From Cyanophora paradoxa CCMP329 (Eukaryota > Plantae > Glaucophyta), in the NCBI GenBank assembly GCA_004431415.1, contig QPMI01000280.1:1323-65322 (forward strand): DNA of 64,000 bases. The letters run 5' to 3'. A program made the translations under genes and the position numbers. Below the pieces are notes generated by a model. The model did not search any database. It was not told the DNA's origin and saw only the letters and a list, made by a program, of their open reading frames with translations. Shown here in pieces: positions 15,087 through 64,000 of this stretch (the first letter of the stretch is position 1; each line of letters starts with the position of its first letter).

Positions 15087-15095
15087 AAAACAAGA

Positions 15096-24400: not shown

Positions 24401-24417
24401 AGAATAGCCCTAGCACT

Positions 24418-38500: not shown

Positions 38501-41500
38501 TCGTTGTCCGTCACTATCAGCGGCGCTGGAACGCGTTGATCGAGCTGATGTACTCCGAAGGCGCGAGGGCGATGTTCGGCGGTTACAAGATGACAGGTCA
38601 TTTCATCCGTCACGGCGAGCAGCAGCGGCGGACCTTGCATGGGCACCTCATCGGCTGGTGCGAAGGCATGCCTATGTACGACACGTGCGAGAAGCAGCAC
38701 ATGAAAGACTACCTCGAATTCTTTGACAGCATCGTCAAGGCGGAGATCCCTCGACCTCCAAAGCCCGACGACCCAGCCGTCCAGGACAACCTTCACGTGC
38801 CGGATGCCCTTCGACATGATTGGGCGACCGCGTTTCTCCGGAAGGTCATCCTCACGTTCAACATTCACCGACACAGCGGCACGTGCCGCATGACGAAGGC
38901 CAAGCAGGCACAGCACTATTCATCTTCCACGCACAAGCGTCACGAAGAGCTCTTCGCCGCTGCAGCGCAGTTCAAGCCGACTCAGGAGTACACGAACCCG
39001 TTGCTGGAAGGATGCCAGCCCATCCACGGCGCTTCCGACAAGGACGCCCAGGAACTTGCCGACCTTGTCAAGAAGCTGAACAACGCCTGGTGGAGGGCGA
39101 GGAAGTGGTGCCGCTTCGGACTGCCAGGCCGCGCGTCCCGATACGCGAGACTCATGTGCGTGCTCAAGTTCTGCGATGACGTGCCCCCGGTCGACGCCAG
39201 GTCGACGCCAGAGCTCAAGAACGCGCAACGCGGCGACAGGCTACTGGTGCCGATGCGACGCACAGTAGAAAACTTGTTTGTGGCGCTGTTCAACGAGTGG
39301 CTGTCCCGCATTGCGCACTCCAACCTCTTCTTCGATCTCGTCGCGGACTTCGAAGCGATGGGAGCGTACATGTTCAAGTACGCACTGAAGGTACGCCCGT
39401 GCTCACGCGTCCCTGGACAGACGTAGCACGTACTGAAGCTCATTGTGCGCCCGCAGGTCGAACCGCAAGCATTGGAGAGCATATACGCTGCGCTCGCAAA
39501 GGCGGGCGAGAAGGGAGGCACCCTACGGAGCGCGATGGCGAAAGCAATTCGGAAGTCGCTCTCGCACCGCGAACTCGGCCGGCCGGAGGCAGCTTTCCAT
39601 ATGCTCAACTACCCCATCTGGCACTCGTCGTTTCACGCCCGCACCGTTCCGTGCATCCCTCCGGACAAGCGGACAAGACGTTCGTACCAGCGCGGCTTCA
39701 TGCGACCGATCCGCAACCGCAATCCTGGCGAGACGAAAATATTCGTCAACAACGACATCGACTGGTACATGGAGAGGCCTGACGACCAGTTCTGGAACGT
39801 GATGCTGCTGTACAAGTTTCTGCAATGGTTTGCCGTCGTCGCCAAGAAAGACGGGATTCGAGGCGACAAGATCGACATGTCTCCCTTGGCAACAGCCACG
39901 TTGGAGACAGGACGAACCGAGCCGCATCACACCGACTCGCAACACGGTGGCGACGAGCCGGAGGATGACGAGGATGACGACGACGACCATCCTGACTCAG
40001 ACGCCCCGGAGTACCCTCAGCGCCAGATCGAACGCGAGCACCGCGAGGAGAAGGCACGGCAGGCCAAGACGTGGGTATTGGACCCGCTCTGGCAGCGATG
40101 GCTGCGTGAAGACGCTCTGTCGGACGAAGAGTGGCGACAACTACAGAAGACGCCACCGCTCGTGATCCCGGACGGAGAAAGGTGCATGCCGTGCTTCAAC
40201 ACCGCGAGCGGCAAGAAACAGCTACGGATGCGACGGCAACCCATGCCAGTTGTGATGCCGTTCAACGTCCACTCCGGCCAAGTTGCCAAGTACGCGCCGC
40301 TCCTCTTCTACCACCCGTTCCGCAACGAGTGGACGGACCTGCTCGACATGCCGGCTCGTGCGGAAGTCACTGACGCCATCCTCGCGGCGGCAATGACAAA
40401 AGCACGGAAGGCAACAATCACGCGCCACGCCTCGGCTGCAAGCGACAACATCCGCGTGCGCATGGAAGAGATCATCAGCCGGATCACCGACATTCCGAAC
40501 ATGACGGCGACGGGCGCAATCGTGACGGAACACGCGGAGCCCAGCACCATCAGAAACGCAGCGAGCGGCTTGGGAGCGGGACTGCCAGCGCCATCGTTTC
40601 AGCCTGCATCCGTTGAAACCGAACAGGCGGTCCTACGAGCGCATGGTGTCATTCCACCCTCCGCTGAAGCGGGGACCGGCGGACCGTCCGTTCAGGCGGC
40701 CCCACCGTCATCCCGAGCTCCACTCGTGTCGCCCGACAACCTGAAGCCCGAGCAACGCGAAATCTACGACAAGATGGTGAAATACTTCGAGCTCAGACGC
40801 AAAGCGGAAGCGCTGAAGGCAAGAGCTATGCGATACAGGCGCGATGCGGAGGGCGGTCAAGACGTGCCGGAGATTCTGAAGTGCTGGTACATGCCTGCAG
40901 GACCGCGCTTCTTCGTCACAGGAGGAGCGGGGTGCGGAAAGACCGTCCTACTGCGCTGCATCGAACACGCTGCAAACCAGTACAACGTTGGTGATGCGGG
41001 ACTGGAGGCCCTCCCTCACGGCCGCTGCACCGTTGCAGCACCGTTCGGTTCCGCAGGCTTCAACGCAGGTGGGGGGACCATGCACACGCGCTTCCACCTC
41101 CAAACGCACCTCTCCGGCAAGCGCGACCAGATCAAGCACAGCAGCTTCACAATCGACAAGCTGCGACTCGAGCTGCAGCAAACGTACGTCCTGCAGATCG
41201 ACGAAATCATGTCCTGCTGGACGAACATCTTCTACTCGTTCAAGACGGCCCTGGAGGACGCCATGTGCGGACGAGAAGCCGTCGGCGACCCGGAGACTGG
41301 CTTGGCGCCGCCACCTCTTCCGCAGTACCAGGTCGGACCCGACGGAAGGACGCCGGTGATGCAACGCTACCCATTCGGAGGCTTGGCAATCATCACGTAC
41401 GGGGACGCGGCCCAGGTGCCGCCGGTCATGTCGCAGTCGTTGTGGGAGACATTGTTGCCGGCACGGAAGGACATTACGATGCAGAATGACGTCAAGTGGC

Positions 41501-43697
41501 ACACGCCGAACCTGCACACCTTCCCCAGCTACTTCACGGCTCACGTCCTGCCCTCGTCGATGCGGCACCTGGCGGATCCAGAACTCGGCCAAATCCTCAA
41601 CTGGTTTCGAGACGGGGATCCGGACCACGTCGACGACGTCTACCACTACCTTCTCCGCCGGTGCCTGGACCTCAACAACGATCTCGGCGACGACAACGAG
41701 AATGCCATCCACAACACGCTGACCAAGAACCAAGACCCCACATGGGACGAAGCGTACCACATGTTCCTCACGAACAAACTCGCAGAGCAGCACAACGACG
41801 CGATGATCCGGCGGCACCACGCGCAGTACCGCGACCCTGTCCTAAAGATCGTCGCCAAGGACACCCATCCCCGCGAGCACATCAAGAAGTGCGAGACCGT
41901 GGACGCGTATGGCCAGATAATCCCATGCACGAACGAGCAAGGCAGCATCCCACACAAGGTCATGGTGACGCCCGGCATCAAGGTCATGCTCAGACAGAAC
42001 CGCGACACAGACGACGGCCTCCTCAACGGGGCCATCGGACTGATCGCAGGTTACAAATGGCGAGAGCACACGGAGACGCCCGACTACATCAGTCAGCACG
42101 CCGCAGACTTTACGCCCGACACGCCGCTCGTGCTCGAACACGCTGCGCCGGATCTCGTCCAGCACGCGCTCGACACTGCGGACCGTGCCCCCAAGCCCGA
42201 GCCGGAACCGGAACCGGAACCCGAACCCGAGCCAGGACCTTCGGACCGGAAGAAGAGCAAGCCAAAGGTCAGCAAGGACAACATCGTACGGGCCGCAGCG
42301 GCGGTGACGAGGCAGAAGAAACAGAGCATAGAGGCGAAGGTGGAGCACCTCCCGCATCCGCACCTCATGCCCCCGATGACGTACTACATCTACTTCCACG
42401 ATGACCGCGTCGGCCGGCGTGCAATCACGGAACGCTGCCAGCTCCCCGACGGTCGAATCGTCGATGCCGTCGAAATCAACGTCGAGCCCAGAAATGCCGG
42501 TGAGCCGCTGCATCTGTCATCACGATCGTCAACGGAGATCCGCTTCCCTCTCGAGATTGACTACCTTCTGCCGGTCCCATTGCGCAGACCACGAGGACGA
42601 AATCGCCGGCGGGGCAGGAGGCACGCACAACGTCAGGATAGGCCCGCCGTTCCGCGTCGCCTACGGCACGACGGTCTACAAGGCTCAAGGGCACACCCTG
42701 AAGCGTGCAATCGCCGACGTGCGGGGCATGAACAGCAGGGACTACACGCACCGACAGCAGCTGTACGTCATGCTCAGCCGCCCGCGCGAGGGAGCGCACT
42801 TCTTCATCGCGAACGCCTCGCTCCTGCAACGGTACGAGCTGCTGCACGTGATTCAGAACGTCAACCCCGACCTGCAAGCCGCCATCAAGGACCAGAAGGC
42901 CGAGAGCGCAGAATTCGCGCGGCTCCGGCAAGACGATCCGAAAACGCACGCAAGAATGTGGGGCCACAAGCTGCAGTATCTGCGCTGGATCGAGGACAGC
43001 ACCGCGCCGCACGGTCAGCGACTCGTCAACGCCGTCGCGATGGAATGCGAGCCAGGCGACTGGGGCCAAGTCGAACAGTTCCAGTGCGAGTTCGAAAAGG
43101 CGGAGGCCGAGTTCAAGAACAAGCGCTTCGTCGACACGATGCCGAAGCGCGTTTCCGCGGCGGCACGCAAGCGTTAAGTGCGTTACTTCATGCAGATCTA
43201 GATGCATTCTGATCATAACTCCCACTGACGTATTTTTGTGTGCAGAAAGAAATAACGCGGTGCATCTACGGGACCTGCATGCACGTGCAGCCAGACTGCC
43301 CGTCGATCATGCCCGCGTTTCTAGGTAGAATTTCGTCCAATTACATGTGTTTCTATACGTTCGCTCGCTCGGCCAGTTACACGCATCTGCATAACTCGGC
43401 CAGCTGCATGCATCTGCCACTTCCTCGTAGCTGCACGTTAATGATTGCGATCATGCCCTGGGCCGTCCCCCGTCCCTGTGCTTGCAGATTGAAAGTTCTT
43501 GTCCAATCAACTCCAATAAATATTACGTGTGTACTCGCTAGGCTGGACTCGCTCCTCAACTGTCTCGCTCCCTTGCGCGTACGGGCCAGCCCGGCGGCCC
43601 AGCTATATATACGCTAGCCAGCCAGCCAACTGTGACAGCCCTGACGGCGTCCTCGAGGCTTCGCCGTACTTAGTGCTCCGCAGGAGCACGGATCTTG
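32592..43697 (+). mobile_element. Helitron2/Helentron-type rolling-circle transposon, 5' end deleted, inserted in viral copy 2
   Basis: Contains the Rep-PIF1 gene. The 3' end CTTA-GTGCTCC-gca-GGAGCAC-ggat-CTTG|T parallels the non-autonomous element, and the left ~850 bp is homologous to it. Confidence 0.87.
35921..43177 (+). CDS. Intron-containing Helitron Rep (HUH)-PIF1 helicase gene; 5' exons uncertain
   Basis: Zn finger CDCC...CAMC and a DUF6570-like region (NGIHPTPP...KVRSVMKLL...NKWY). Rep motifs GPPQIWYTMSFND, EQQRRTLHGH, YMFKYALK. PIF1 motifs TGGAGCGKT, IDEI, GDAAQVPPV, LLNGAIG, AYGTTVYKAQG, QLYVMLSR. GT-AG introns at ~38218-38280, 39391-39456 and 42500-42586 join the track ORFs. Confidence 0.9.
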
Positions 43698-43774
43698 TAA
43701 GGGTCGTTCCAGTAAGCGCCATGTCTTATGTTTAAAATACGAAAAGAAATTTTTAATTTACATTATTAAACAGA

Positions 43775-44677
43775 ATGACGCGTTACTATCTTAATATTGA
43801 TTCCCGGGATCGGGATGATGGAACCCCCACAAACTATTCATACAAACTTCCCCATGCAATCCAAAATGTTAAAGCATGTCGTGTTACCAATTTCGAAATG
43901 TTCAATAACATTTACAATCTCAGCGAAAATGGAGCGCTCGTAACCTCTACACTCGATGGACAAGGAGCAACCAAAACTAAATCAAACACAATTTCAAAAG
44001 GGGCATACACAGCAGAGAGTTTGGTGAATTATCTAAATGCTCTACTGTTATCCCAGACATACAGTGCATCGGGAACTACATATACCCGTCATTTCAATGT
44101 GTCTTATGACTCTACCACAATGAAACTAAGGATTATTGGCGAAGCAACATTTACTATACGTTTCGGTAGTCGGATTTTAGCCAATTTCTTAGGTTTCCCG
44201 GATCCATCAATTAATGGCTCGGGTTTAGGTTATCCATCCACACCTCTTGGTTCACCCGTTACTGTTGGTGGTTTTACTTATAATCATTACCTCGACAGTG
44301 TCATACCACTCGATCTTCTGTTTAATTCTTACATCCTTCTACATGTCGATCCACTCAAAGGCAACTACGTAAGCAAGAATACCAGCGATGATAAAACCTT
44401 AGCTAAAATTGAGATTGACCAGACCGTAGGTAGTCTCCTAAAATATGATTCTACCAATAACTCTATGATCATTCATGAGCAAAACGGATTAGTGGAAGTT
44501 GAGACGCTTAAAGTGCGTTTGACGTATTGGAATGGTAACGAAACGGACATTACCACGGATTGGTCAATGACCTTAGAACTGATCACTGAAGATGAAAAGG
44601 ATCTAACGAAAGCAGCATTGAAAAACGTCGTTAGAGATTTGGAAAACGTCTATTTACCATTTGGTCGTAATATGTAA
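43775..44677 (+). CDS. Minor capsid protein (penton-like, single jelly-roll)
   Basis: N-terminus YLNIDSRDRD, then YILLHVD, LAKIEID and C-terminus LKVRLTYWNG...DWSMTLEL: the pattern I recall for pentons of PLVs, virophages and NCLDVs. Intact 300-aa ORF. Confidence 0.78.
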   Translation: MTRYYLNIDSRDRDDGTPTNYSYKLPHAIQNVKACRVTNFEMFNNIYNLSENGALVTSTLDGQGATKTKSNTISKGAYTAESLVNYLNALLLSQTYSASGTTYTRHFNVSYDSTTMKLRIIGEATFTIRFGSRILANFLGFPDPSINGSGLGYPSTPLGSPVTVGGFTYNHYLDSVIPLDLLFNSYILLHVDPLKGNYVSKNTSDDKTLAKIEIDQTVGSLLKYDSTNNSMIIHEQNGLVEVETLKVRLTYWNGNETDITTDWSMTLELITEDEKDLTKAALKNVVRDLENVYLPFGRNM

Positions 44678-44709
44678 TATTGCTGAATAATTTTGTGGGG
44701 TTATTTCAA

Positions 44710-45456
44710 ATGGCTCGTAAGACACAACCCAAGAATTTCTTAGCAAAACCCGTCGAACAAGCGGAACCGGAACGGAAGCATTACAAGAAATCGAAAGGAA
44801 CCGCAGCGTTTGGAACCGCTGATATCGAAAAGAATATTAATAATATGATTAATTCCCATGCTGTGGCGCCAGTAGACGACATTAACGATGGTAACGCCCT
44901 TGTTGAGCAAGTGCCGCTAAATCGTATGCCCGGTGCAAAGCGTGGGATCAAAAAGGGGCAGTTCAACAGTTCCACCGTTGATGCCGTTAACAAGAAGTCT
45001 ACTCTTCTTAAACTTCTCGATGGCGGTGAACGTCTGTATTCCACGTATTCGGAAAAAGACCACCGTAACCGTTACTTTATCAGAGCAACCACTGGTGGAC
45101 TGAAAACGATCACATACAAACACGCTAAAAGTCTCATTGAGGGAATCGCTGATGAGACACAAAAAGAGAAGAAGATAACAGAGCAACCGATAACCAAAGA
45201 GAAGGTAGACAAGAAACCAAATGTTACGTTTGATGTCCTACCGGATCCGATCAAAGAGGAGAAACACACACCGACGGAATTAATCGCTAAGACGATCGAT
45301 TACCAAGAATCCAATAAAACGGATTTACCAGTGCTTAACAAATCAATCCTCCGGGTTGCTACATCGCAATCCGACCCGCTTAACTCCATTCCAAATGCAG
45401 CGCCGATGCTTTCCGGATTCGCTAAATTGGGTCTCCGCCCAGGCTATCGCCGTTAA
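44710..45456 (+). CDS. Conserved basic viral protein of unknown function (possible virion core protein)
   Basis: ATG at 44710 (MARKTQPK...); the C-terminal part is strongly conserved with 15716-16172. Confidence 0.8.
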   Translation: MARKTQPKNFLAKPVEQAEPERKHYKKSKGTAAFGTADIEKNINNMINSHAVAPVDDINDGNALVEQVPLNRMPGAKRGIKKGQFNSSTVDAVNKKSTLLKLLDGGERLYSTYSEKDHRNRYFIRATTGGLKTITYKHAKSLIEGIADETQKEKKITEQPITKEKVDKKPNVTFDVLPDPIKEEKHTPTELIAKTIDYQESNKTDLPVLNKSILRVATSQSDPLNSIPNAAPMLSGFAKLGLRPGYRR

Positions 45457-45535
45457 GCGACGGCTCACGCATCATTCTCACGTTAAAATTTTCTTTTCAA
45501 AGAATAGCGCAATACCCTCCATTCCGAAAGTTTGC

Positions 45536-45710
45536 GCTCACGTTTACTTATTTTTATAAGTGGCGTTGTAGGAAAGTTGTGAAACATTCTATGTTTTTCA
45601 CTTTTTAATCACCTTTTCTACGGGGTTCATTCGTAGAATCGAGGAAGCGAAGACGGCACGCAAGCGAGCCTTAGCGATGCTCTTTCGGCTTATTTTTCCG
45701 GCATCTTCTT
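45536..45710 (+). other. Conserved non-coding viral segment with a hairpin (candidate ncRNA or cis-element)
   Basis: Blocks GCTCACGTTTACT, GTGGCGTTGTAG, TTCTACGGGGTTCATTCGT and TTATTTTTCCGGCATCTTCTT are shared with copy 1 (reverse complement of ~15453-15612); no shared ORF found. Confidence 0.55.
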
Positions 45711-45831
45711 ATTATCGATGCGCAGCGCTCCAATGCATAGGGGCAAAAAATGACAGCTTTTTAAAGCGGTCTTATATCAAAGAAGAAAACCACTTAAAGA
45801 TTTCTTGCTATATAGTAACAGTGATATACCA

Positions 45832-46048
45832 ATGACGACCAGCGCAGCCCAGAAGCGTGCGAATGCGAATTACCGGGCGACCGGTAAAGGTAAAATTGCC
45901 CTCCAAAAGAATAAGGACAAAATGCTATCGGTCGTTAAAGATCGTTCAAGCAAGCCACCGGGCATATTCCAATAATGCGATTTGTTTCGTGAAGTTCTTG
46001 ATTGGCGTTCCCTACAATAATGTGGGTCGCCCATCGAAATATATCTAA
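45832..46048 (+). pseudogene. Small basic viral protein, frameshifted homologue of 15096-15350
   Basis: The N-terminus (MTTSAAQKRANANYR) and C-terminus (NAICFVKFLIGVPYNNVGRPSKYI) lie in different frames. Confidence 0.75.
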
Positions 46049-48679
46049 GTCTTTTTTCTCAGCGCGCTTGCTCTGAGAAGACAAAACCGCGGTAAACGCG
46101 CTAAACACCATAAATACACCTTTGAGTTATTTTTAGGTCTCCATGCGTCTCGCTAAGCAAGCCTTGCGCCAGCGCTGATGGAGCCGCTACTTTTGTTATT
46201 TTTACATAACCCTCAAAATTCGCGATAATTGATTTTGTGGGTCGCCAAAAAATGACGTCAAGGTGAAAAAATGATTTAAGGATAATTTTCTTTGAATATA
46301 TTAAGAACGCCTAAGGATGCCTCGCGCTGTAAGTTATCGGAATGCTAAGATTCGTAAAGAAATTAGAGCGGTAAATGATTATGGATACGCGAGTGGGTTT
46401 CTGACTGAGGAACAGTATGATGCTTTCAATTACTTTGCCTTTCAGAAAAGACCAAGGGGGAATGGATTGAATGATATCTTATATTCGATTAACGATATCA
46501 TCGCACGCGGTGAAGCTCGACAGAATGCGGAAGACGAAATACGTCGTCTCGGGGCTATTGATGTCCCACAGGAACTTGTGAATCAGCGACCGGAGAGAAA
46601 CACGCAGTCTCACATGACCCGGTTCAATCGCATGATGAAGATTATCAGCGACAGTATCGAAAATTCAAACAGTGAAACGTTTTCGGTGATGTTTCTTCTC
46701 TATCGGGAAGTTACCGATGAAAACGAAAGAATACCCGAACGTCGTCGAATACCCGAAAGAGGGCGGTAAACGCTACTATACGCCAATGAAAGGGAGAAAG
46801 GATGAATCACTACATGGGATTACTTGCAATAAAGCCACACTCATTAGATCTCTTGCACTCTCAAAAGACATTTTCCGAAAGAAGCCATGTATCCGTGAGT
46901 ATGACATTAACGAATTCATCCTTATTAATTTGGAATCCGGACGTAATCAGGATCTAACATACCTTCGACATATATATAGTGATCAATACCCTTCCGTCTT
47001 AACAATCGAAAAGATCATACCAGACGGTCAAGCGAACATTATCCCGAAGGTGAATCAAATTCTACGCGAATACCAAGCCCCCATGATTTCATTCAAATAT
47101 CTCGGTTATGAAATCCCGACAAATGCTAAATCATTTGCAGAACTATTCGATAGAGACGGTATATATCAGTATCGTATTAAGGCGTGCGTTTTCGATGCGC
47201 TTGTTCTTGTTTTCGCTTCCGCTTTTGAGAAGGCAAAAAAACAAGGTCGTTATGGTTCTGTCCGTTGGGATCATGCCTATTTGTTTAAAATGGTGCATGG
47301 AAGAGATCCCGTGGATGGTGATGATTGGGGGTTATCATTAAACCAAATGATCGATAAGATATTGAAGCCTTACCGCATTTCGCTTGTCGTTGTTGACGAA
47401 ATGGACAAGATCGACCACGATTTATCTTATATTCCGATGGATTCTGAGGGAAAGCGAATAAGAAACAAGCGACTGTGTCCTTCCACTATGTATGTGAAGA
47501 TTCAAAATGGACACATGTATTTGCTGAATAAGAAGGTGGAAAGTCTCATACAGTCTTTCAATGGAACTAAACCGGTTGAAAAGAAACGCCCACTTTCTTG
47601 CAGATACAAGATTAACAAGAAGTTCAATCATAGCTATTTCGCACGCAATCCTGATGATATCGCGGTAATCCTCCATTCGAAGGCAGTCGAAGATAAGACA
47701 CTTATTCGTATCATGTATGGCGGCGAAGGTGGGCTTAATGCATTATACGCGTATTTCGTGGCGGTTCATAACTACATCCCCGATGCGAAGGTTTCCCTTC
47801 TAAGATCCGTTCAAGACATCAAATTTAAATACGGCGAAAAGGATGTATTGATAGTAGGGGTTTGCTCTGATGTGGATGTAGAAACGGCTTATAACATTCA
47901 GTTTGATAACGAAGAGCAACGCGACACGTTTTCGAAGTATAACCACAAATTCCGGTTATCTTTGATCAATTCCCAGCATAAGAGCTGTTACAATGAGAAC
48001 ACGCGAAATGCTTTCATCATTGGTTCCCAAAGTGCATTAATCGGACGCTTTGAGGATTCAGCAGAGATCGCGAAAGATTTAGCGGATGGTGTCCTAAAAG
48101 TAATCGAACATGACGCCATTAAATCTTACCCTTCTCATCTTAACAGTCTCGAAGAATTCCCAGTATTTAGCGAATTCGACGATTTCAAGCAGGTAACCGT
48201 GAATTCATCGGACGAAGTCGAACCTTACAGTTTCTACTATCTGACACTGAAAAAGGGAACCTACAAGATCAAGAAAGACACGAAAGGCAAAGAATACATT
48301 TCATATCAGTTTCCCAAGGTGAAACGTATTCTCGTAGATTCCCCATGTAATCTTCTACCCGGCTTTGTTCTAAAAGAGCATTTCGAAGATCTGAAAGACA
48401 TCGTGGACATTAAAAGCGTTCTCAGACCATAACGACCTGTCAAGAACAACGTTAAACACATGATTAAACAGATCTTAGAAAGCAATTCTTGTAAGAAGCA
48501 GATTCTTGTAAGTGTTATTCTTGTAAGTGTTATTGGAATGCTCGGTAAACAGAAAAACCAAAAGTTCAGAACTAAGACATTCTTTAACAAATCCGACGCT
48601 TATGATTACGCTAAGAAGCATGGCGGGGAGGTGAAGTTACTTTATTTGGGTAAGCAGGAACAGACCGAGGAGTTCTACG

Positions 48680-51600
48680 GTTTTTTTGGAAAGTCTGCTC
48701 CATTCGTACACACATGACAGCAGTCCCCCGCTCCGCGCCTACCGGATACTGGGAAAGCCAAGCTACACTGAGGAAAAGGGCGAGCTCGGTTCTATAGCTT
48801 GTTGTCGTAGTCGAGCTGATGCTGAAGCTGTAGCCGTCAGGTCGCCCCCAACACATAATATGCGCCGGTCCTCAAGTAGGAGGCGTAGGCATGCTGAGCT
48901 ACACGGTCCTAGATGCCCTCTTGCTGGTTCTAAAACATGGCCGCGGGTCGCTCGTGAAGGGGGGAGTTGAGAGAGGAGGTGGGGAGGGAGAGATGGGAGG
49001 GTAGGTTCAGGTTGTTGCGCTGGGTCTTGGATCGCGCCGCCCAAGTCCACGGGTGCGGCGGGGTGTTGGGAGCAGGGCGTCGCTGGCCGAACGTGAGGAG
49101 CCGAAGCTCCTAAACCTCGGCCTTACGGGCCCGCTGGGCCCTGCCGACGCCGCGTTCGAGTCTCCTCCAGCTGGGCCTCCTCCCGCTCCCGTCGCCGCCG
49201 TGGGGTCCTGAGCGGGCGCGTCCTTACCTATGCGCGCACCCTCGTCCTAGCCCGCCCCCCCCCCACTCCGAACCCCCCCCCCCCCTCTTCCTATCTATAT
49301 TGCAGGAGGACGAAGGCAAAAAACTTCCAAAAAGGCCTTCGCGTTCACATTAGGGGCTGAGCCCGGGGAGGAGAACATCAGTTCCAGGCTAGGGGCACAA
49401 CCCCATGAAATCTACTGTTGTAGACGTGAAAGTTCATTCGACTGAAAGAAAAGATTGTCCAAAGAAAGGAAGGATAGCTAGAGAAAGGGTCTCCTGCACA
49501 GGAGAGGAAAGGAGCTAGCTGCTCGATAGCTCCGGGCGGCCGTGAGCCGGAGCCTCCCGCCTTCGAGGCTACGCTGCCTGGTTGAGGTAGCGTTTGGCCG
49601 CCTTGTTGGCGGCGATCTCCGCGGCCTTCTGGGCGAGCCGGCGCTTGCTCTCGCGGCCGGTCTGCTGGCGCGGGGCTGGCGGGGCCGGCATCATGCCGGC
49701 GGCAGCGGCGGCGGCGGCGGCTTCGCGCTCAGCCGCACGGCGCTCGTTGCGACGCATCTGCGGGCAGCGGGGTCGGTCATTCCGAAGGAGACGGGCGGGC
49801 GCGCTGGGCTCGCCTCGGACGGAGACTGGTGCCGGTGGACCGGGCGTTGCATGTCGAGGAGGCTGAAGCGGCGGACCGCGCTGCTCGTGGTGCTGACGGA
49901 GGCGGCGGACACGACGGAGGCGCGGTCGTCGTCGTCGCTGTCGGTGTCAGCGTCGGCGTTGACGGCGGCGCGCGTGCGCGCAAGGTCCGTCCGGAAGGTG
50001 TCAGTGGCGGAGCGCGCGGCGGCCGCCCGAGCCGCTTCGGCGGCCGCTTTCGCCACCGCGGAGCCCACGGGCGCGCCGCAGACACGCACTGCCTTGGCGG
50101 CCGCGTAGTCGGCGGTCTTTTTGATGAAGTCGTCTTGCGCCTTGGGGCACTTCCCGGTTCGCCCAGGGGTGGCCGTACGGGTCGTCCATGATGCAGCACG
50201 CCTGTAACGGAGTGAGTGTGCGCGAGTTCGCGACGCATAGACGCGGCGGGGCGTCGCGCGTACCGAGGTACAGATGATGCCGAGAGGCTCGCCGGCGGGC
50301 GCCGGAATGAGACGGAAGCGGATGTCGAGCGGGTTGAGGCCGCCGACACGCCAGCGAGGCCGGGAGTTGCCCAGCGGGTGCGCAGCAAAGAAAGAAGAGT
50401 TGACGTAGCGCTCGAAGTCCGGGTTGCGGAGGACGAGGCGGAGGGCGAAGGGCGCCTGCGAGGTCGATTCGACGTAGAAGATCTCCCAGTGGTGGATGTT
50501 CTCCACGCCACAGTGGCGGAGAAAGTGCACGACCTGGGGGCGCGCCCGTCAGGCGTCGGCGTGGGTGCACGCGTACGCGGGCACGTGGGGCGGTGCGCGC
50601 ACCAGCGAGCCGTCCGGGCGGCGGCCCTTGGGGGCGGTCATTAGCAGCACGATGGCGTCCTTGGGGTACTCGCTGAGCGGGAACCGTTGTTCCCCGGTCG
50701 CCGTTACGTCACGGATGCAGACCTGATGCTCGCTTTCAAGGATCGCGTAGTCCTTCGACATTGCCAGGAGCACGTCCGCGTACTGCCCGAACAGATTCTC
50801 GTCAGCTTAAGAGACCGGGTGCGAGGTGTGGGCGCCATCAGGTGCGCACCTTGCGAGGCATGGCAGCGAAGAGGACGGGGCGGGCGTTGAGCCGCTCCTG
50901 GCGGTCTTGCGCGAAAGTCGAGGCCTCGTATCCGATGCCGAGGATCGCGTTCTGGACCTCCACCGGGTCCGGACGCGGGAGCTTCGCGGAGGTGAAGGCG
51001 TTGACGATGAACGACGTCACCTTTTCCTTGCACTCCTCATGGCGGATGTGCGTGTGCTGGTCCGTTTTCTTCTCGCCGCGGCCGTCTGCAAGAGAGGGGC
51101 GACGGCAGGGTAAGGCACGTGCGCGCAGGGCTCCGCAGCGCGGCGGGGCGTACAGAGAGGCGGCATGCCGTGGAACGCGAGTGTCGGGTTCTCGCGGTCC
51201 TCGATGAGAATAGTGGACTCGAAGTGAATCCTGAGCAAGGGTGGAGTGAGAGGCGGTGAGCGCGCGCACGGGTGCGAGCACGTGCACCGGTCATTGTTGA
51301 GGTCCCGAATGTCGAGCTCTCGCAGCTCCTCTATCGTCTTGTAAACGGCGGCCTTGTCGTCGAGCTGCCGCACGCAGAAGGCGAAGGTGTTGGACACCGG
51401 GTAGTTCTCCGTGACCACGACCTTGCTGGCAAGGCCGTGTAGCTTGAGCTGTTGCTCGAGGTGAAGCATGATCTCCCGCTTGGACGGGTCGCGGTTCTGG
51501 AAGTTGCAGCCGGGAATGAAAGGCTTGCACGCTTCCTTGTAGGCGAACAGTGCCGCATTGTAGGACTGGAGTCGGGACTCGGCTGTCTTGCCGTAGGGAA

Positions 51601-51951
51601 CAACTTCGGTGTAGCCGGCCTGTGCCGACGAGTTCGCCGGGTTTATCGGAGCTGGTAGTCCCGACGGCGGGGCCGGTCCATCGGTCATCATTTCGTCCGA
51701 GCTCGAGGAGCGCGAGTTCGTCGATGAGGAAGCAGGGCGAGGTGTCTGTCCGGGCACGCCTGGCTTGACGCCCAGCGAGCCGATGCCGGGAATCTGGGGA
51801 AAGTGTCGGCCGACCGTCGCAGCGGGCACCGCCGCGGTCCGGCACGCACCAGAGATGCAGTGGACATCGGGAGAGGCTCTGACGAGCAGCAGGGACGCCT
51901 ATGCGGCGCGACGACCTTGCGGTCGTGAACTTTCCGGGTACCGGAAAGTCC
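48680..51951 (-). mobile_element. 3.27-kb insertion with a 19-bp TSD and short poly(A); non-autonomous non-LTR-like element encoding one protein
   Basis: cagaccgaggagttctacg at 48661-48679 and 51952-51970; T7 at 48681-48687 (A-tail on the - strand). Removal restores ...QTEEFY-DEYEDPQ of the viral gene. Confidence 0.88.
49569..51867 (-). CDS. Seven-intron gene (~620 aa) for a putative ORF1p/gag-like nucleic-acid-binding protein; one 1-nt frameshift near 50166
   Basis: Introns at 51794-51849, 51231-51287, 51086-51153, 50783-50849, 50534-50602, 50202-50263 (GT-AG) and 49758-49813 (GC-AG) join the track ORFs in frame. Splicing creates a Cys/His knuckle CTSACC...H...C. The product call is tentative. 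Confidence 0.7.
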
Positions 51952-53747
51952 CAGACCGAGGAGTTCTACGACGAATACGAAGACCCACAGGTAATGTGTG
52001 ATGAGTTGGACATTAAGGTTCCGCACGTGTGGTATGTTATCAAAGTTGAGGATAAGTTACTTATCGATGGGTTCCTTCCAATTCAGTGTATGATTTATTC
52101 CATGCAGCGCATGCGTCTTTACGAAAAGTGCAAGGAATTAAAGGGGATTGTTGGAGCTATTAAGGTTGATGCGGTCTACGAACTAATCGATGAAGGCGAA
52201 AAAGTCGATTACATCACGCTCGACCGAACCAAATATGAGAATATTGGAAAGTTCACCAGCAAGCCCATTAATTCCAAGGATTACCACAAAAAGGTGTATC
52301 AGAACAAAGGGAAGAACTCAAACGGTAACATCCGATTTTGCAAGCCTGAGAGAATGAAGGATTTCGTCCAAACGCACACATGGGAATGCAAAACTTACAC
52401 TGTTGCGGATGAATTTAGCACCCAGTCCATCTGTGATTTGATGCATAACGGTAAGAATCGGATCGTGAAGGCTCTTTATCCGGGAGGCGGAAAATCGACC
52501 GCTTGTTTCGCAGTGACCAAAGCATTTCTCAAAAACCCCGCGTTCATTGTTCCTTTCAATAAGCGTGTTAAGGAATTGAAGACTGAAAATGGGTTTACGA
52601 ATGTGTTCACCATTCATGATGCTTTCAATCTCAGGGTAGATAACAACGATATGGACGATGTCGTAGGTATTAATGTGCGGAAGTTAGAGGCTCACGATTG
52701 TTTCGTAATTGATGAAGGGTATCAGTGGACTATTCCGCAACTTGCCGCGCTTAAACATGTTATGACGGTTGCGTCCCCGGAGAAGACATATATAATCAAT
52801 GGTGACCCTACACAGAATCCACCTATTCAGTTCCTAAGCGTGGATCGAACAGCTCTTTTCGTGTAAGTTGGAACTTCTAATAGACAAGCGCCATGTTTTG
52901 CCGGAGGATCGGGAAATGATCAAGGAGATGAAGAAAGACCTTATCGAAGGTGATATGGAGGTTTCCGCGATGATTCAGAAATATAAGTTTCAAGTTGTTC
53001 ACCCCGACGAATTGCAACCGGGCGATAAGATTATTACTTACACGAACCGGAAAGCCGCACAGATGAATGCTTTCATACACCGTAAAAAAATGGTAAAGAT
53101 GCTCCGACTCATTTCAAAGGTCTCGAAATCGTCGCAAGGCATCGAATCACCAAAGGGAAGACGGTAGACGGTGAGCGCGTTATGATCCATAATGGATTCT
53201 CGTATATTATCGAAAAGATCGACGAAACCACACTTACGATTTCGGATTACGCGGATCGAAACATAGTAATCACGCTTCCCTATGATTGCATTCAGAGCTT
53301 CTCGTTTCCGCATGCTAATACCTGTCACGTTGCGCAAGGCGACACCATTAAAAATTCTCGTGTTGCGATCTGTGAAACGAGTTCTCCTTACGTTAATAAA
53401 TATTGGTTTTGGGTAGCCATTACACGAACGCCGTATTTAAAAGACACGGTTATTTGCGTGGATGAAAGCGAAATATTCAATATGGGTGCGTTCAAAACCC
53501 GAATGCATCGATCTATTCAGGGATACAAGCAACAAGACCAGAAGGCAGAGCGACCTTATGATGAATCCCAGTATGTTACATACGAATGGATCAAGCAAAG
53601 GATGGGTAAACAATTTGGGTTCTGTTCAAGATGCTACCAAATCATGGATCTCGAAGAAGTTTCGGTAGATCGTGAAAATAACGCAGTCGCTCATGTGATA
53701 GGGAATATTTCCCTCTCTCATATTAGTTGTAACTGTGCCGCGCAGTA

Positions 53748-54476
53748 ATGGATACCGTCTTATCTTACAAGAAATACCGGCAGAAGTTGATAAATGAAGG
53801 TGTGAGTTTTGATGAAGCGAAATTAAAACAGCAGTTTGCAAATTCGGAATTACAACAAATTTTTAAAAAACCCCAGAAACCTTAAACGTTTTTAAGTATC
53901 GTAGCTAATCCCCGTTCATTCCAAGTAGATATTATGTTTTTTAGAGGATTCCAAACAGCAAACAGAGGAATGGGAGAGGCGCTTACGTTTATTGAAATTC
54001 TTAGTCGAAAAGCGTTTGTTTATCCTTTTAAAGACTCTTCCGAAATTCGCGATATATTAGATAGATTCAAACGGGATGCGGGAAGAGTTGTAGGATTGGC
54101 GGGAGATAATGAGTTTAGCAATGCAGTTTATCGGGAATGGTGCAGTGCGAATGGCGTAGAACTTTACACAGATGTAGCAAAAGACGACCATGTAACAGTT
54201 GGTAATAAGTTAGGTATCATAGATAGATTCACAAGGACTTTTAAGCAATATCTGAGAAAGGCGATGGTTGCAAAAAGGGACAAGTAAATGGCTCGATTTA
54301 GTAGGCGATGTTTTAAACACTTATAATACATCTCCTCATTCTTCTTTGAAGAACGACACACCAAACAACGTATACAGTAATGACCAAAAACAATTATACA
54401 TTTACCTACGTGACAAAGTGCATAATGAAAGATTGACACAGAAAGAAGTGGGAGACGTCAAACCGGGCGATACAGT
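53748..54476 (+). pseudogene. rve integrase of viral copy 2, two in-frame stops, 3'-truncated by SatA
   Basis: MDTVLSYKKYRQKL...FQVDIMFF...LAGDNEFS...LGIIDRFTRTFK...YNTSPHSSL...VKPGDTVR, then satellite. Confidence 0.9.
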
Positions 54477-57400
54477 TAGAAGAAAGATGCGCTTCACATC
54501 TCTCTGGGAGAATATGCACAAGGCGCTAGCCTTAGGCAGATTACTCTTCCAACCAGCAAGTCACGCAGTCAGAGGCTGCAGGTTTCCGATCTGCCAGAAA
54601 AAAGAAGAAGGATGCACTTCAAATCTCTCTGGGGGAATATGCACAAGGCGCTAGCCTTAGGCAGATTACTCTTCCAACCAGCAAGTCACCCAGTCAGAGG
54701 CCGCAGGTTTCCAATCTGCCAGAAAATAGAAGAAGGATGCACCCCAAATCTCTCTGGGGGAATATGCACAAGGCGCTAGCCTTAGGCGAATGACCCACCC
54801 ACCAGCAAGTCACTCAGTTGAAGGCCCCAGGTTTCCGATCTGCCACAAAATAGAAGAGAGAGATGCACCCCAAATCTCTCTGGGGGAATATGCACAAGGC
54901 GCTAGCCTTAGGCAGATGACCCACCCACCAGCAAGTCACTCAGTTGAAGGCCCCAGGTTTCTGATCCGCCACAAAATAGAAGAAAGATGCACTTCAAATC
55001 TCTCTGGGGGAATATGCACAAGGCGCTAGCCTTAGGCAGATGACCCACCCACCAGCAAGTCACTCAGTTGAAGGCCCCAGGTTTCCGATCTGCCAGAAAA
55101 TAGAAGAAAGATGCACCCCAAATCTCTCTGGGGGAATATGCACAAGGCGCTAGCCTTAGGCAGATGACCCACCCACCAGCAAGTCACTCAGTCGAAGGCC
55201 GCAGGTTTCCGATCTGCCACAAAATAGAAGAAAGATGCACCCCAAATCTCTCTGGGGGAATATGCACAAGGCTCTAGCCTTAGGCAAATGACCCACCCAC
55301 CAGCAAGTCACTCAGTCGAAGGCCCCAGGTTTCTGATCTGCCACAAAATAGAAGAAAGATGCACCCCAAATCTCTCTGGGGGAATATGCACAAGGCGCTA
55401 GCCTTAGGCAAATGACCCACCCACCAGCAAGTCACTCAGTCAGAGGCCCCAGGTTTCCGATCTGCCAGAAAATAGAAGAAGGATGCACTTCAAATCTCTC
55501 TGGGGGAATATGCACAAGGCGCTGGCCTTAGGCAGATGACCCACCCACCAGCAAGTCACTCAGTCGAAGGCCTCAGGTTTCCGATCTGCCACAAAATAGA
55601 AGAAAGATGCGCTTCACATCTCTCTGGGAGAATATGCACAAGGCGCTAGCCTTAGGCAGATTACTCTTCCAACCAGCAAGTCACCCAGTCAGAGGCTGCA
55701 GGTTTCCGATCTGCCAGAAAAAAGAAGAAGGATGCACTTCAAATCTCTCTGGGGGAATATGCACAAGGCGCTAGCCTTAGGCAGATTACTCTTCCAACCA
55801 GCAAGTCACCCAGTCAGAGGCCGCAGGTTTCCGATCTGCCAGAAAATAGAAGAAGGATGCACTTCAAATCTCTCTGGGGGAATATGCACAAGGCTCTAGC
55901 CTTAGGCGAATGACCCACCCACCAGCAAGTCACTCAGTTGAAGGCCCCAGGTTTCCGATCTGCCACAAAATAGAAGAAAGATGCACCCCAAATCTCTCTG
56001 GGGGAATATGCACAAGGCGCTGGCCTTAGGCAGATGACCCACCCACCAGCAAGTCACTCAGTTGAAGGCCCCAGGTTTCTGATCCGCCACAAAATAGAAG
56101 AAAGATGCACTTCAAATTTCTCTGGGGGAATATGCACAAGGCTCTAGCCTTAGGCAGATGACCCACCCACCAGCAAGTCACTCAGTTGAAGGCCCCAGGT
56201 TTCCGATCTGCCACAAAATAGAAGAAAGATGCACCCCAAATCTCTCTGGGGGAATATGCACAAGGCGCTAGCCTTAGGCAGATGACCCACCCACCAGCAA
56301 GTCACTCAGTCGAAGGCCCCAGGTTTCCGATCTGCCACAAAATAGAAGAAAGATGCACCCCAAATCTCTCTGGGGGAATATGCACAAGGCTCTAGCCTTA
56401 GGCAAATGACCCACCCACCAGCAAGTCACTCAGTCGAAGGCCCCAGGTTTCTGATCTGCCACAAAATAGAAGAAGGATGCACCCCAAATCTCTCTGGGGG
56501 AATATGCACCAGGCGCTAGCCTTAGGCGAATGACCCACCCACCAGCAAGTCACTCAGTCAGAGGCCCCAGGTTTCCGATCTGCCACAACATAGATGAAGA
56601 ATGCACCCCAAATCTCTCTGGGGGAATATGCACAAGGCGCTAGCCTTAGGCAGATTACTCTTCCAACCAGCAAGTCACTCAGTTGAAGGCCCCAGGTTTC
56701 CGATCTGCCACAAAATAGAAGAAAGATGCACCCCAAATCTCTCTGGGGGAATATGCACAAGGCGCTAGCCTTAGGCAGATGATCCACCCACCAGCAAGTC
56801 ACGCAGTCAGAGGCTGCAGGTTTCCGATCTGCCAGAAAATAGAAGAAGGATGCACTTCAAATCTCTCTGGGGGAATATGCACAAGGCGCTGGCCTTAGGC
56901 AGATTACTCTTCCAACCAGCAAGTCACCCAGTCAGAGGCCGCAGGTTTCCAATCTGCCAGAAAATAGAAGAAAGATGCACCCCAAATCTCTCTGGGGGAA
57001 TATGCACAAGGCTCTAGCCTTAGGCGAATGACCCACCCACCAGCAAGTCACTCAGTTGAAGGCCCCAGGTTTCCGATCTGCCACAAAATAGAAGAAAGAT
57101 GCACCCCAAATCTCTCTGGGGGAATATGCACAAGGCGCTAGCCTTAGGCAGATGACCCACCCACCAGCAAGTCACTCAGTTGAAGGCCCCAGGTTTCTGA
57201 TCTGCCACAAAATAGAACGCAGATGCACCCCAAATCTCTCTGGGGGAATATGCACAAGGCGCTAGCCTTAGGCAGATGACCCACCCACCAGCAAGTCACT
57301 CAGTTGAAGGCCCCAGGTTTCCGATCTGCCACAAAATAGAAGAAAGATGCACCCCAAATCTCTCTGGGGGAATATGCACAAGGCTCTAGCCTTTGGAAGA

Positions 57401-60400
57401 TGACCCACCAACCAGCAAGTCACTCAGTTGAAGGCCCCAGGTTTCCGATCTGCCAGAAAATAGAAGAAGGATGCACTTCAAATCTCTCTGGGGGAATATG
57501 CACAAGGCGCTAGCCTTAGGCAGATGACCCACCCACCAGCAAGTCACTCAGTCGAAGGCCCCAGGTTTCCGATCTGCCACAAAATAGAAGAAAGATGCAC
57601 CCCAAATCTCTCTGGGGGAATATGCACAAGGCGCTAGCCTTAGGCAGATGACCCACCCACCAGCAAGTCACTCAGTCAAAGGCCCCAGGTTTCCGATCTG
57701 CCACAAAATAGAAGAAAGATGCACCCCAAATCTCTCTGGGGGAATATGCACAAGGCGCTAGCCTTAGGCAGATGACCCACCCACCAGCAAGTCACTCAGT
57801 TGAAGGCCCCAGGTTTCGATCTGCCACAAAATAGAAGAAAGATGCACTTCAAATCTCTCTGGGGGAATATGCACAAGGCGCTAGCCTTAGGCAGATGACC
57901 CACCCACCAGCAAGTCACTCAGTGAAGGCCCCAGGTTTCCGATCTGCCACAAAATAGAAGAAAGATGCACCCCAAATCTCTCTGGGGAATATGCACAAGG
58001 CGCTAGCCTTAGGCAGATGACCACCCACCAGCAAGTCACTCAGCGAAGGCCCAGGTTTCCGATCTGCCACAAAATAGAAGAAAGATGCACCCAAATCTCT
58101 CTGGGGGAATATGCACAAGGCTCTAGCCTTAGGCAAATGACCCACCCACCAGCAAGTCACTCAGTCGAAGGCCCCAGGTTTCGATCTGCCACAAAATAGA
58201 AGAAAGATGCACCCCAAATCTCTCTGGGGGAATATGCACAAGGCGCTAGCCTTAGGCAAATGACCCACCCACCAGCAAGTCACTCAGTCAGAGGCCCCAG
58301 GTTTCCGATCTGCCACAAAATAGAAGAAGGATGCACCCCAAATCTCTCTGGGGGAATATGCACAAGGCGCTAGCCTTAGGCAGATACCCACCCACCAGCA
58401 AGTCACTCAGTCGAAGGCCCCAGGTTTCCGATCTGCCAGAAAATAGAAGAAAGATGCACCCCAAATCTCTCTGGGGAATATGCACAAGGGCTAGCCTTAG
58501 GCAGATGACCACCCACCAGCAAGTCACTCAGTCAAGGCTGCAGTTTCCGATCAGCCAAAAATAGAAGAAGATGCACTTCAAATCTCTCTGGGGGAATATG
58601 CACAAGGCGCTAGCCTTAGCAGATGACTCCCAACCAGCAAGTCACCAGTCAGAGGCCCAGGTTTCCATCTGCCAGAAAATAGAAGAAGATGCACTTCAAA
58701 TCTCTCTGGGGAATATGCACAAGGCTCTAGCCTTAGGCAATGACCCACCCACCAGCAAGTCACTCAGTGAAGGCCCCAGGTTTCCGATCTGCCACAAAAT
58801 AGAAGAGAGAGATGCACTTCAAATCTCTCTGGGGGAATATGCACAAGGCTCTAGCCTTAGGCGAATGACCCACCCACCAGCAAGTCATTCAGTTGAAGGC
58901 CCCAGGTTTCCGATCTGCCACAAAATAGAAGAAGAGATGCACCCCAAATCTCTCTGGGGAATATGCACAAGGCGCTGCCTTAGGCAGATGAACCACCCAC
59001 CAGCAAGTCACTCAGTGAAGGCCCCAGGTTTCTGATCTGCCAGAAAATAGAAGAAGGATGCACTTCAAATCTCTCTGGGGGAATATGCACAAGGCGCTAG
59101 CCTTAGGCAGATGACCCACCCACCAGCAAGTCACTCAGTCAGAGGCCCCAGGTTTCCGATCTGCCACAAAATAGAAGAAAGATGCACTTCAAATCTCTCT
59201 GGGCGAATATGCACAAGGCGCTAGCCTTAGGCAGATGATCCACCCACCAGCAAGTCACTCAGTCGAAGGCCGCAGGTTTCCGATCTGCCAGAAAATAGAA
59301 GAAGGATGCACCCCAAATCTCTCTGGGGAATATGCACAAGGCCTAGCCTTAGGCAATGACCCACCCACCAGCAAGTCACTCAGTCGAAGGCCCCAGGTTT
59401 CGATCTGCCACAAAATAGAAGAAAGATGCACCCCAAATCTCTCTGGGGAATATGCACCAGGCGCTAGCCTTAGGCAATGACCCACCCACCAGCAAGTCAC
59501 TCAGTCAAGGCCCCAGGTTTCCGATCTGCCACAAAATAGAAGAAGATGCACCCCAAATCTCTCTGGGGAATATGCACAAGGCGCTAGCCTTAGGCAGATG
59601 ACCCACCACCAGCAAGTCACTCAGTTGAAGGCCCCAGGTTTCCGATCTGCCAAAAATAGAAGAAAGATGCACCCAAATCTCTCTGGGGAATATGCACAAG
59701 GCGCTAGCCTTAGGCAGATGACCCACCCACCAGCAAGTCACTCAGTCAAGGCCCAGGTTTCCGATCTGCCAGAAAATAGAAGAAGATGCACTCAAATCTC
59801 TCTGGGGGAATATGCACAAGGCGCTAGCCTTAGGCAGATGACCCCCACCAGCAAGTCACTCAGTCAAGGCCCAGGTTTCCGATCTGCCACAAAATAGAAG
59901 AAGATGCACTCAAATCTCTCTGGGGAATATGCACAAGGCGCTAGCCTTAGGCAGATGACCCACCCACCAGCAAGTCACTCAGTCGAAGGCCCCAGGTTTC
60001 CGATCTGCCACAAAATAGAAGAAAGATGCACCCAAATCTCTCTGGGGAATATGCACAAGGCTCTAGCCTTAGGCAAATGCCCCACCCACCAGCAAGTCAC
60101 TCAGATGAAGGCCCCAGGTTTCCGATCTGCCACAAAATAGAAGAAAGATGCACCCCAAATCTCTCTGGGGGAATATGCACAAGGCGCTAGCCTTAGGCAG
60201 ATGACCCACCCACCAGCAAGTCACTCAGTCGAAGGCCCCAGGTTTCCGATCTGCCACAAAATAGAAGAAAGATGCACTTCAAATCTCTCTGGGGGAATAT
60301 GCACAAGGCGCTAGCCTTAGGCAGATGACCCACCCACCAGCAAGTCACTCAGTCGAAGGCCCCAGGTTTCCGATCTGCCACAAAATAGAAGAAAGATGCA

Positions 60401-63400: not shown

Positions 63401-64000
63401 CAGCAAGTCACTCAGTTGAAGGCCCCAGGTTTCGATCTGCCACAAAATAGAAGAAAGATGCACTTCAAATCTCTCTGGGGGAATATGCACAAGGCGCTAG
63501 CCTTAGGCAGATGACCCACCCACCAGCAAGTCACTCAGTTGAAGGCCCCAGGTTTCCGATCTGCCAGAAAATAGAAGAAAGATGCACCCCAAATCTCTCT
63601 GGGGGAATATGCACAAGGCGCTAGCCTTAGGCAGATGACCCACCCACCAGCAAGTCACTCAGTCGAAGGCCCCAGGTTTCCGATCTGCCACAAAATAGAA
63701 GAAAGATGCACCCCAAATCTCTCTGGGGGAATATGCACAAGGCGCTAGCCTTAGGCAGATGACCCACCCACCAGCAAGTCACTCAGTGAAGGCCCCAGGT
63801 TTCCGATCTGCCAGAAAATAGAAGAAAGATGCACCCAAATCTCTCTGGGGAATATGCACCAGGCGCTAGCCTTAGGCGATGACCCACCCACCAGCAAGTC
63901 ACTCAGTCAAGGCCCCAGTTTCCGATCTGCCAGAAAATAGAAGAAGGATGCACTTCAAATCTCTCTGGGGAATATGCACAAGGCGCTGGCCTTAGGCAGA
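54477..64000. repeat. Satellite A tandem array (~124-bp monomer), running off the window end
   Basis: Same monomer and orientation as 1-6340 and more homogeneous. The variant gcttcacatc recurs at 54491 and 55611 (~9-mer). Confidence 0.97.

Follow-up and report, generated by a model that had tools for sequence, protein, structure and literature searches.

A seven-intron, gene-shaped mobile unit with a 19-bp target-site duplication in Cyanophora paradoxa

How can a piece of DNA that bears a footprint of the kind left by reverse transcription still contain all of the introns of its gene? This question is raised by a locus of the glaucophyte alga Cyanophora paradoxa CCMP329, where a unit on the minus strand (48680..51951) is inserted into the reading frame of another mobile element. 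The locus lies in a window of 64,000 nucleotides (the whole stretch of DNA analyzed here, from contig QPMI01000280.1), to which all positions below refer. The window is nuclear DNA, from contig tig00001182 of C. paradoxa; the inserted unit is the annotated gene g7484, and the translation of each exon is contained without change in the published model. In textbooks, RNA-mediated copying is recognized by the loss of introns, a mark by which retrocopies in genomes are counted. We find that the unit belongs to a small, apparently young family of gene-shaped mobile units, which is non-autonomous by every test applied. Insertion by target-primed reverse transcription of an unspliced RNA is the explanation that we tentatively favor, while giving it somewhat less than an even chance.

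The insertion and its footprint

The unit has a length of 3,272 bp and a GC content of 65.5%. It is flanked by two perfect copies of a 19-bp direct repeat (CAGACCGAGGAGTTCTACG), which are read directly in the sequence at 48661..48679 on the left and at 51952..51970 on the right; these are the two copies of the target-site duplication (TSD) that the initial annotation had reported. A chance repeat was rejected, because only about 4e-5 such pairs are expected in 4.6 kb. The repeats are located exactly at the edges of an island with 62-74% GC, which is embedded in a background of 41-43% GC. When the insert and one copy of the repeat are removed, the open reading frame (ORF) that runs on the plus strand from 48460 stays in frame and resumes at 51971. 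Furthermore, an intact 1367-aa paralogue of the interrupted gene at 10757-14860 is collinear with the target gene on both flanks of the insert. Because of the perfect repeat, the in-frame empty site and the collinear paralogue on both sides, the unit is a true insertion with a TSD. The ratio of observed to expected CpG (CpG o/e) in the unit is 1.15, so that it is not decayed; this value and the perfect TSD suggest that the family is young. No second copy was found within the 64-kb window.

A single-copy host-gene fragment, captured by repair, was considered and rejected, since the footprint lies inside the ORF of a transposable element (TE) and the family occupies four further loci. The unit is mobile or was mobilized, in agreement with the initial annotation, which had described it as a mobile element.

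The insert spans exactly one transcription unit: a leader of 84 nt is followed by eight exons, which are separated by seven short introns, and by a 3' untranslated region (3'UTR) of 0.9 kb. The gene model in the window was placed by coordinate arithmetic and its exons were searched singly; work on the whole length was done with the database proteins P0001 and P0007, the latter being the published model of the window copy (tig00001182_g7484.t1). All features of the gene are on the minus strand. The unit starts with the 5' untranslated leader (51868..51951), without an upstream promoter region, and the ATG is at 51867. Exon 1 (51850..51867), which encodes MSTASL, matches P0007 and P0001 exactly, and exon 2 (51288..51793, 506 nt) is identical to P0001 in 166 of 168 residues. 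They are followed by exon 3 (51154..51230, 77 nt), exon 4 (50850..51085, 236 nt), exon 5 (50603..50782, 180 nt) and exon 6 (50264..50533, 270 nt), which has at its end the first Cys of a Cys/His motif. Exon 7 (49841..50201, with a GT donor at 49840, or extending to 49814 if a GC donor is used) contributes the C-x7-H-x7-C part of this knuckle together with an Ala-rich and acidic tail. Exon 8 (49569..49757, 62 codons plus TAG) encodes a basic Ala-rich C-terminus, which is identical in the paralogue P0002.

The seven introns measure 56, 57, 68, 67, 69, 62 and 56 nt, and they have GT(G/A)CGY donors, CAG acceptors and branch motifs of the CTGAC/CTCAC type. The first six are GT-AG introns at 51794..51849, 51231..51287, 51086..51153, 50783..50849 (with a CTGAC branch motif), 50534..50602 and 50202..50263. 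Introns 1 to 5 are exactly those of the published model P0007, and the models P0001, P0008 and P0002 splice out intron 6. The initial annotation had counted six GT-AG introns and one GC-AG intron. All seven could be located, but the seventh is a GT-AG intron of 83 nt (49758..49840) in the published models instead of a GC-AG intron of 56 nt (49758-49813). The GC donor at 49813 is also in frame; its use retains nine residues, VHRHQSPSE, which resemble VQPQHKPKS at the same place in a distant relative (contig L001, see below). The seventh intron may hence be of either form, with the GT-AG version being the one that other gene models use.

With the seventh intron taken as the 56-nt GC-AG version, the exons sum to 1864 nt, which is 1 modulo 3, and the gene must therefore contain one frameshift. 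The 1-nt correction in a run of C that had been suggested for it did not hold up: comparison with the intact paralogues places the lesion at 50153..50154 (cgg^gaag), where the intact copies read WANRWKCPK and the window copy is short by 2 nt. The published model of the window copy keeps intron 6 and in this way masks the frameshift. Because of the 2-nt gap relative to the intact copies, the window copy is a pseudogene, killed by this frameshift.

The ends of the unit were also inspected for repeated and folded motifs; these observations were made post hoc and come from one copy. On the minus strand, the unit starts with GGACTTTCCGG and ends with GACTTTCCAAAAAAAC. Its first 25 nt (51927..51951) form a hairpin of 11 bp, GGACTTTCCGG-TAC-CCGGAAAGTTC, which contains two inverted copies of ACTTTCC. 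The hairpin has a folding energy of -17.1 kcal/mol and a z-score of -3.5, and none of 200 shuffled sequences was as stable. The unit contains four copies of ACTTTCC, and three of these are within 25 nt of an end. The last 15 nt (48680..48694) read ACTTTCC-AAAAAAA-C; the A7 is seen as T7 on the plus strand (48681-48687) and is followed by a C before the TSD, so that the tail is A7C. The complement of this terminus, TTTTTGGAAAGT, recurs with one mismatch and in opposite orientation in the loop of a second hairpin in the 3'UTR. When one mismatch is allowed, TTTTTGGAARGT has only two occurrences in 64 kb: one is complementary to the 3' terminus with its A7, and the other, in opposite orientation, lies in the loop of this hairpin. 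Since the motif recurs inside the unit, the A7 may be an encoded terminal motif rather than an added tail. The A7 of the initial annotation is thus present, but with the following C and the internal recurrence it is weak as evidence for a poly(A) tail.

The second hairpin (CGAAGGC...GCCTTCG with a U-rich loop, 49311..49341) lies in the 3' non-coding region of 889 nt (48680..49568). Just downstream of it are a G10 and a G13 tract (49252..49288); they are the long G-tracts which the initial annotation had described for this region. Terminal inverted repeats (TIRs) were not found; the ends of the unit share only a motif of 7-8 nt in direct orientation, in addition to the palindrome at the 5' end. 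A search of 48400-52200 against Rfam gave no ribozyme and only a sub-threshold match to a miRNA. As a side observation, the last base of the TSD and the start of the unit (51942-51952, minus strand) together read GGGACTTTCC, which is the classical consensus of an NF-kappaB site; for an alga, such a match is almost certainly coincidental.

A family with retained introns and an orphan protein

A HMMER scan with exons 6 and 7 against 1.84 billion representative proteins resulted in five proteins, and a follow-up search added two more. In C. paradoxa, the family has five annotated loci including the window copy; the others are on tig00020996, tig00000215, tig00001340 and tig00000451. The protein of the window copy, P0007, is from EukProt (EP00741) and has 632 aa. 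Among the other four, P0001 is intact (612 aa), P0008 (376 aa) and P0002 (tig00001340_g8290, 232 aa) are without an N-terminus, and P0003 (493 aa) is a more distant relative with 53% identity. P0001, P0008 and P0002 are 97-98% identical to the window copy in the amino acid sequence of the exons; an exon-by-exon comparison gives 585 of 600 identical residues with P0001 and 292 of 297 with P0008. The expectation that further copies of the unit would exist is thus borne out by four additional loci.

The fact that P0008 reads through introns 5 and 7 means that a second genomic copy carries both of these introns, and their retention is therefore not confined to the window. In addition, this copy offers an internal comparison: between P0008 and the window copy, 7 of the 50 read-through intron 'codons' are changed versus 5 of 297 codons in the exons (Fisher p = 4e-4). 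Because the exon codons are far better kept than the intron 'codons', the protein was under selection while the copies diverged. In P0002 and P0008 the C-terminus is retained and the N-terminus is missing, as would be expected of 5'-truncated copies. In P0002, residues 1-52 are an unrelated N-terminal segment (...LRPKRLTDTEIIFLTHVVIMPRITYGL...), which is joined to the final six residues encoded by exon 6 and to exons 7 and 8. This segment may be similar to the region after the reverse transcriptase (RT) domain in ORF2 of long interspersed elements (LINEs), which would point to a copy that was truncated at its 5' end and lies within a LINE; searches of Pfam and PDB gave no support for such a similarity.

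More distant kin were found in three Logan contigs (L001-L003, from runs SRR31724264-66). These contigs, with 65-67% GC, encode proteins that are 31-39% identical, and introns with the same GTGCG donors are located at the positions of introns 1, 2, 4, 5 and 6. The contigs L002 and L003 are 98.9% identical to each other; a 63-nt intron 5 (GTGCGC...CTGAC...CAG) is present in L003 (627-689) and exactly absent from L002 (at 302), which retains intron 6. This difference shows that the homologous intron 5 can be removed precisely at its GT..AG borders, no matter whether the contigs come from DNA or RNA. With the exact absence of the 63 nt and the positions kept in the kin, the introns of the family are genuine spliceosomal introns that can be removed from the RNA. 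A second feature shared with L002 is the 3'UTR hairpin: aligned over 32 positions, it matches L002 1485-1516 with 90.6% identity and is about equally far from the stop codon, while the proteins are only 35-39% identical. Between the window copy and L002, the hairpin is thus kept more strongly than the coding sequence. The L002 contig and its similarity to the 3'UTR both stop at the point at which the G-tracts follow in the window copy.

Searches of metagenome and viral collections with an alignment of the family proteins gave no relatives. The same was true for a metagenome scan with a DNA pattern of the hairpin, in which the spacing was that of the L002 form only and not that of the window's own hairpin. 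A homologue search with the database protein P0004 returned only P0004 itself. In the literature, we found no description of this family or of runs SRR31724264-66.

What does the gene encode? A Pfam search with each exon and with the full-length paralogues P0001 and P0003 gave no family and no RT, endonuclease or transposase; ORFs in the 3' region had no match to RVT. These results, together with the lack of TIRs at the ends of the unit, agree with the initial annotation. Searching PDB sequences with exons 2-3 and 6-7 gave nothing meaningful. AlphaFold2 was run on P0001 (mean predicted confidence, pLDDT, 34.6) and, with an alignment built by hand, on residues 60-452 (pLDDT 45.6); with these shallow alignments both models failed. 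In a Foldseek search against PDB nothing was found at E <= 0.001; the best matches were generic RRM, ACT and ferredoxin-like folds, which we do not count as evidence. The sequence itself has a disordered N-terminus, repeated beta-alpha-beta units, an acidic stretch and a basic Ala-rich helical tail, and there are invariant acidic residues among the kin. The Cys/His knuckle that had been noticed in the spliced frame is real: a C-x4-C-x7-H-x5-7-C motif, split by intron 6, is kept in all kin, although its spacing is non-canonical. It is a reasonable guess that this orphan protein is of a ribonucleoprotein or ORF1-like type.

How the unit may have moved

Most of the established classes do not accommodate the unit. 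It encodes, as judged by Pfam, neither the RT nor the APE- or RLE-type endonuclease of an autonomous LINE, and a simple deletion derivative of a LINE was rejected because there is no RT remnant. Processed retrocopies are free of introns, and here all seven introns are present. A Helitron was rejected because the unit has a TSD and its ends, GGAC...AAAC, are not of the form 5'-TC...CTRR-3'. The initial annotation had cited HAL1 and Penelope-like elements (PLEs) as partial precedents. These are analogies only, and membership fails in both cases: no homologue of LINE ORF1p, the hallmark of HAL1-type elements, was detected in Pfam or PDB sequence searches, and the unit has no ORF with RT and GIY-YIG domains, no Penelope-type long terminal repeats (pLTRs) and no hammerhead ribozyme.

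Among the closest likenesses are the retroposons that depend on LINEs, such as SINEs, SVA, processed pseudogenes and HAL1. Like these, the unit has a long TSD (19 bp in the window copy, within their range of 7-20 bp), an A-run at the 3' end and borders that match a transcript; it is without an RT or endonuclease of its own, and the family is multi-copy with decayed and possibly 5'-truncated members. Like HAL1, it has kept one protein gene. It differs from them in the seven introns of the window copy and the introns of another copy, in the tail of A7 followed by C, which is part of an internally recurring motif, and in its protein, which has no detectable similarity to LINE ORF1p or to other known families. 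No partner LINE was identified. LINEs make up 2.47% of the C. paradoxa genome (PMC6704402).

The 19-bp duplication and the borders that match a transcript point to target-primed reverse transcription, and a non-autonomous element that inserted in this manner from unspliced RNA is the explanation we tentatively favor. The RT and endonuclease of a LINE-type element would nick the plus strand after ...TTCTACG, the unspliced transcript of a family member would be copied from its 3' end (...ACUUUCCAAAAAAAC), and a second nick 19 bp away would give rise to the duplication. The spliced mRNA would in turn be translated into the orphan protein of 612 aa with its beta-alpha-beta units, C-x4-C-x7-H-x5-7-C knuckle and basic helical tail, and this protein may bind the family RNA. 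Signals in cis would be provided by the terminal ACTTTCC motifs and by the hairpin that is conserved in the 3'UTR. A wider version of this scheme is more doubtful. It would make the family a new kind of retroposon, shared among glaucophytes, which moves by means of its own unspliced transcript and a borrowed RT while the spliced transcript provides a lineage-specific protein that binds this RNA and marks or protects it; the cis signals would be the 5'-terminal hairpin, the 3'UTR hairpin and the terminal ACTTTCC-A7.

Several points weigh against reverse transcription of an unspliced RNA. Only one copy is seen at the DNA level and the others are seen as protein models; the truncations of P0002 and P0008 are taken from gene models by Augustus, which can be wrong. 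The tail is doubtful as poly(A) for the reasons given above. An RT partner was not identified, the RT in the window being of the Ty3/gypsy type only, next to a Helitron. We know of no LINE-type mechanism for the systematic use of an unspliced RNA with seven introns that look efficient, and a DNA-level mechanism would retain the introns without special pleading. Finally, the unit looks like an ordinary C. paradoxa gene in its seven short introns, its GC content of 65-68% and its short UTRs.

This last point leads to a rather unlikely alternative, in which the family is an ordinary glaucophyte multigene family and the window copy a by-product, either of a LINE RT that was active in the nucleus and switched template onto a nascent, unspliced pre-mRNA or of the repair-mediated capture of a piece of DNA the size of a gene. 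Genes of C. paradoxa have 9.2 introns per gene with a mean of 86 bp and 67.6% GC (Price et al. 2019, PMC6704402), and the unit resembles them in GC content, in the number and size of its introns, in the splice motifs and in having been annotated as a gene. The family is also old, with intron positions kept in kin of 31-39% identity, and its copy number is low. In the template-switch version, the distal 0.6 kb beyond the G-tracts would be the tail of a LINE or a transduced 3' flank; the similarity to L002, which stops before the G-tracts, fits with a transcript that ends near 49295 and leaves the remaining 615 nt as foreign. However, one-off accidents do not easily explain several dispersed copies with 97-98% identity and with introns wherever these are visible, and repair capture gives no 19-bp TSD. 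The unit further differs from ordinary genes of C. paradoxa in that it encodes an orphan protein and has its TSD inside the ORF of another element within satellite DNA; insertion into DNA rich in satellites and TEs, followed by decay through a frameshift, is TE-like behavior. The retained introns would also be explained if the family were an undescribed DNA transposon, in which an unrecognized transposase binds ACTTTCC at both ends and cuts with a stagger of 19 bp, without any RNA intermediate. Introns in transposase genes are normal for eukaryotic DNA transposons, and in elements such as P, hAT, CACTA and MULE, as in the unit, one multi-intron gene fills most of the element and a short motif is repeated at both ends. 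The concentration of ACTTTCC near the ends, with two copies in the terminal palindrome, and the A7 as part of an internally recurring inverted motif are in line with this explanation, as is a protein under selection with a zinc-knuckle-like motif and invariant acidic residues. We still consider it unlikely. The unit has none of the usual TIRs, Pfam detects no transposase, integrase or HUH domain, and the pattern of secondary structure and the non-significant fold matches are of the RRM/ferredoxin type and not of the RNase H fold. The TSDs of eukaryotic cut-and-paste superfamilies are 2-11 bp long; one of 19 bp, about twice that of any known superfamily, is within the range of LINEs and PLEs.

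Two further explanations also assume an RNA intermediate. A quite improbable one is that of an antisense retroposon: with an RNA of the plus strand as the intermediate, the introns could not be spliced and all seven would be kept without any escape from splicing, the hairpin at 51929-51949 would be the site for the RT, and the 0.9-kb '3'UTR' of the gene would be a promoter. Stringent-type LINEs recognize 3' stem-loops, and a perfect 9-bp hairpin indeed lies 2 nt from the 3' end of the plus strand. The fold of this strand is, however, unexceptional (z -1.6), such an intermediate would carry at its 5' end a T7 without any role, and the two apparently truncated copies keep the 3' end of the gene, which would be the RNA's 5' end and thus the wrong end for 5' truncation. 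Mobilization in trans by a PLE, finally, we regard as very improbable. To our knowledge no PLE is known from C. paradoxa, and neither a hammerhead ribozyme nor any other notable Rfam match is present in 48400-52200. The unit shares with PLEs and with the host genes which they mobilize an RT-type footprint combined with spliceosomal introns and a host-like gene content, and the variable length of their TSDs is compatible with 19 bp. Penelope elements are the only type of retroelement known to spread genes with introns, and in this respect they are also a precedent in favor of an RT-mediated origin of the unit. The Penelope machinery does copy intron-containing host genes with TSDs, but in the reported cases the genes are framed by pLTRs (Arkhipova et al. 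2013, PMC3846280). A gene framed in this way was rejected here, since the unit has no terminal repeats longer than 8 nt and no ribozyme.

The surrounding DNA and the meaning of the family

The neighborhood of the insertion is heterochromatin-like and consists of satellite arrays with nested mobile elements between them. A 124-bp satellite forms large arrays at 1-6340 and 54477-64000 and a 206-bp satellite does so at 6341-9181 and 16173-21170; a segment of about 40-50 nt is common to both. In sampled stretches of the two satellites, CpG is strongly depleted (o/e 0.28-0.29), while the inserted TEs are not depleted. The arrays look like the (peri)centromeric heterochromatin of C. paradoxa.

The target of the insertion belongs to an AT-rich element, of which the window contains two inverted and diverged copies (9200-16170, minus strand, and 43500-54476, plus strand) with about 40% amino acid identity. 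The element has 41-45% GC and a CpG o/e of 1.3-1.5, a composition that looks foreign or virus-like. Its protein of about 1370 aa has a weak signature of an SF1 helicase (AAA_19/AAA_30), and a weak rve-integrase-like ORF is found at 9688-10656; no match of the element's proteins was above threshold in Pfam, and nothing was found in PHROGs or PDB. The gene split by the insert (46317..53745, plus strand) is a degenerate copy of the helicase-like gene. It contains a change of frame near 46740-46770 (region 46736-46774) and an in-frame stop at 48430-48432, both of them upstream of the insertion; it was probably degenerate before the unit inserted.

Another AT-rich segment (21500-24300) contains an ORF for a retroviral-type aspartyl protease (23607-24302, minus strand), which could be part of the AT-rich element family described above or of a distinct long terminal repeat element. 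Next to it, at 24300-31000, the AT-rich DNA has insertions of pieces of the Ty3/gypsy type, with RVT_1 at 26556-27644 and RT_RNaseH at 29860-30984. A GC-rich Helitron occupies 36000-43300; it has a Helitron_like_N domain at 38281-39426 and, after it, an ORF of 1255 aa (39445-43212) that contains a PIF1 helicase domain. A tRNA scan of the window found none.

What the family means for genome evolution depends on how it moves. If it moves through RNA, a clean footprint of the target-primed type would be compatible with seven kept introns, in several copies, and the retention of introns would extend beyond Penelope-like elements. Some multigene families of intron-rich protists that appear 'ordinary' would then be retroposons in disguise. 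If it moves as DNA, the family would have an unrecognized transposase with staggered cuts of unusual length. In both cases, it would be a mobile-element family characterized in the glaucophyte lineage, where 11.5% of the C. paradoxa genome consists of unclassified repeats (PMC6704402).

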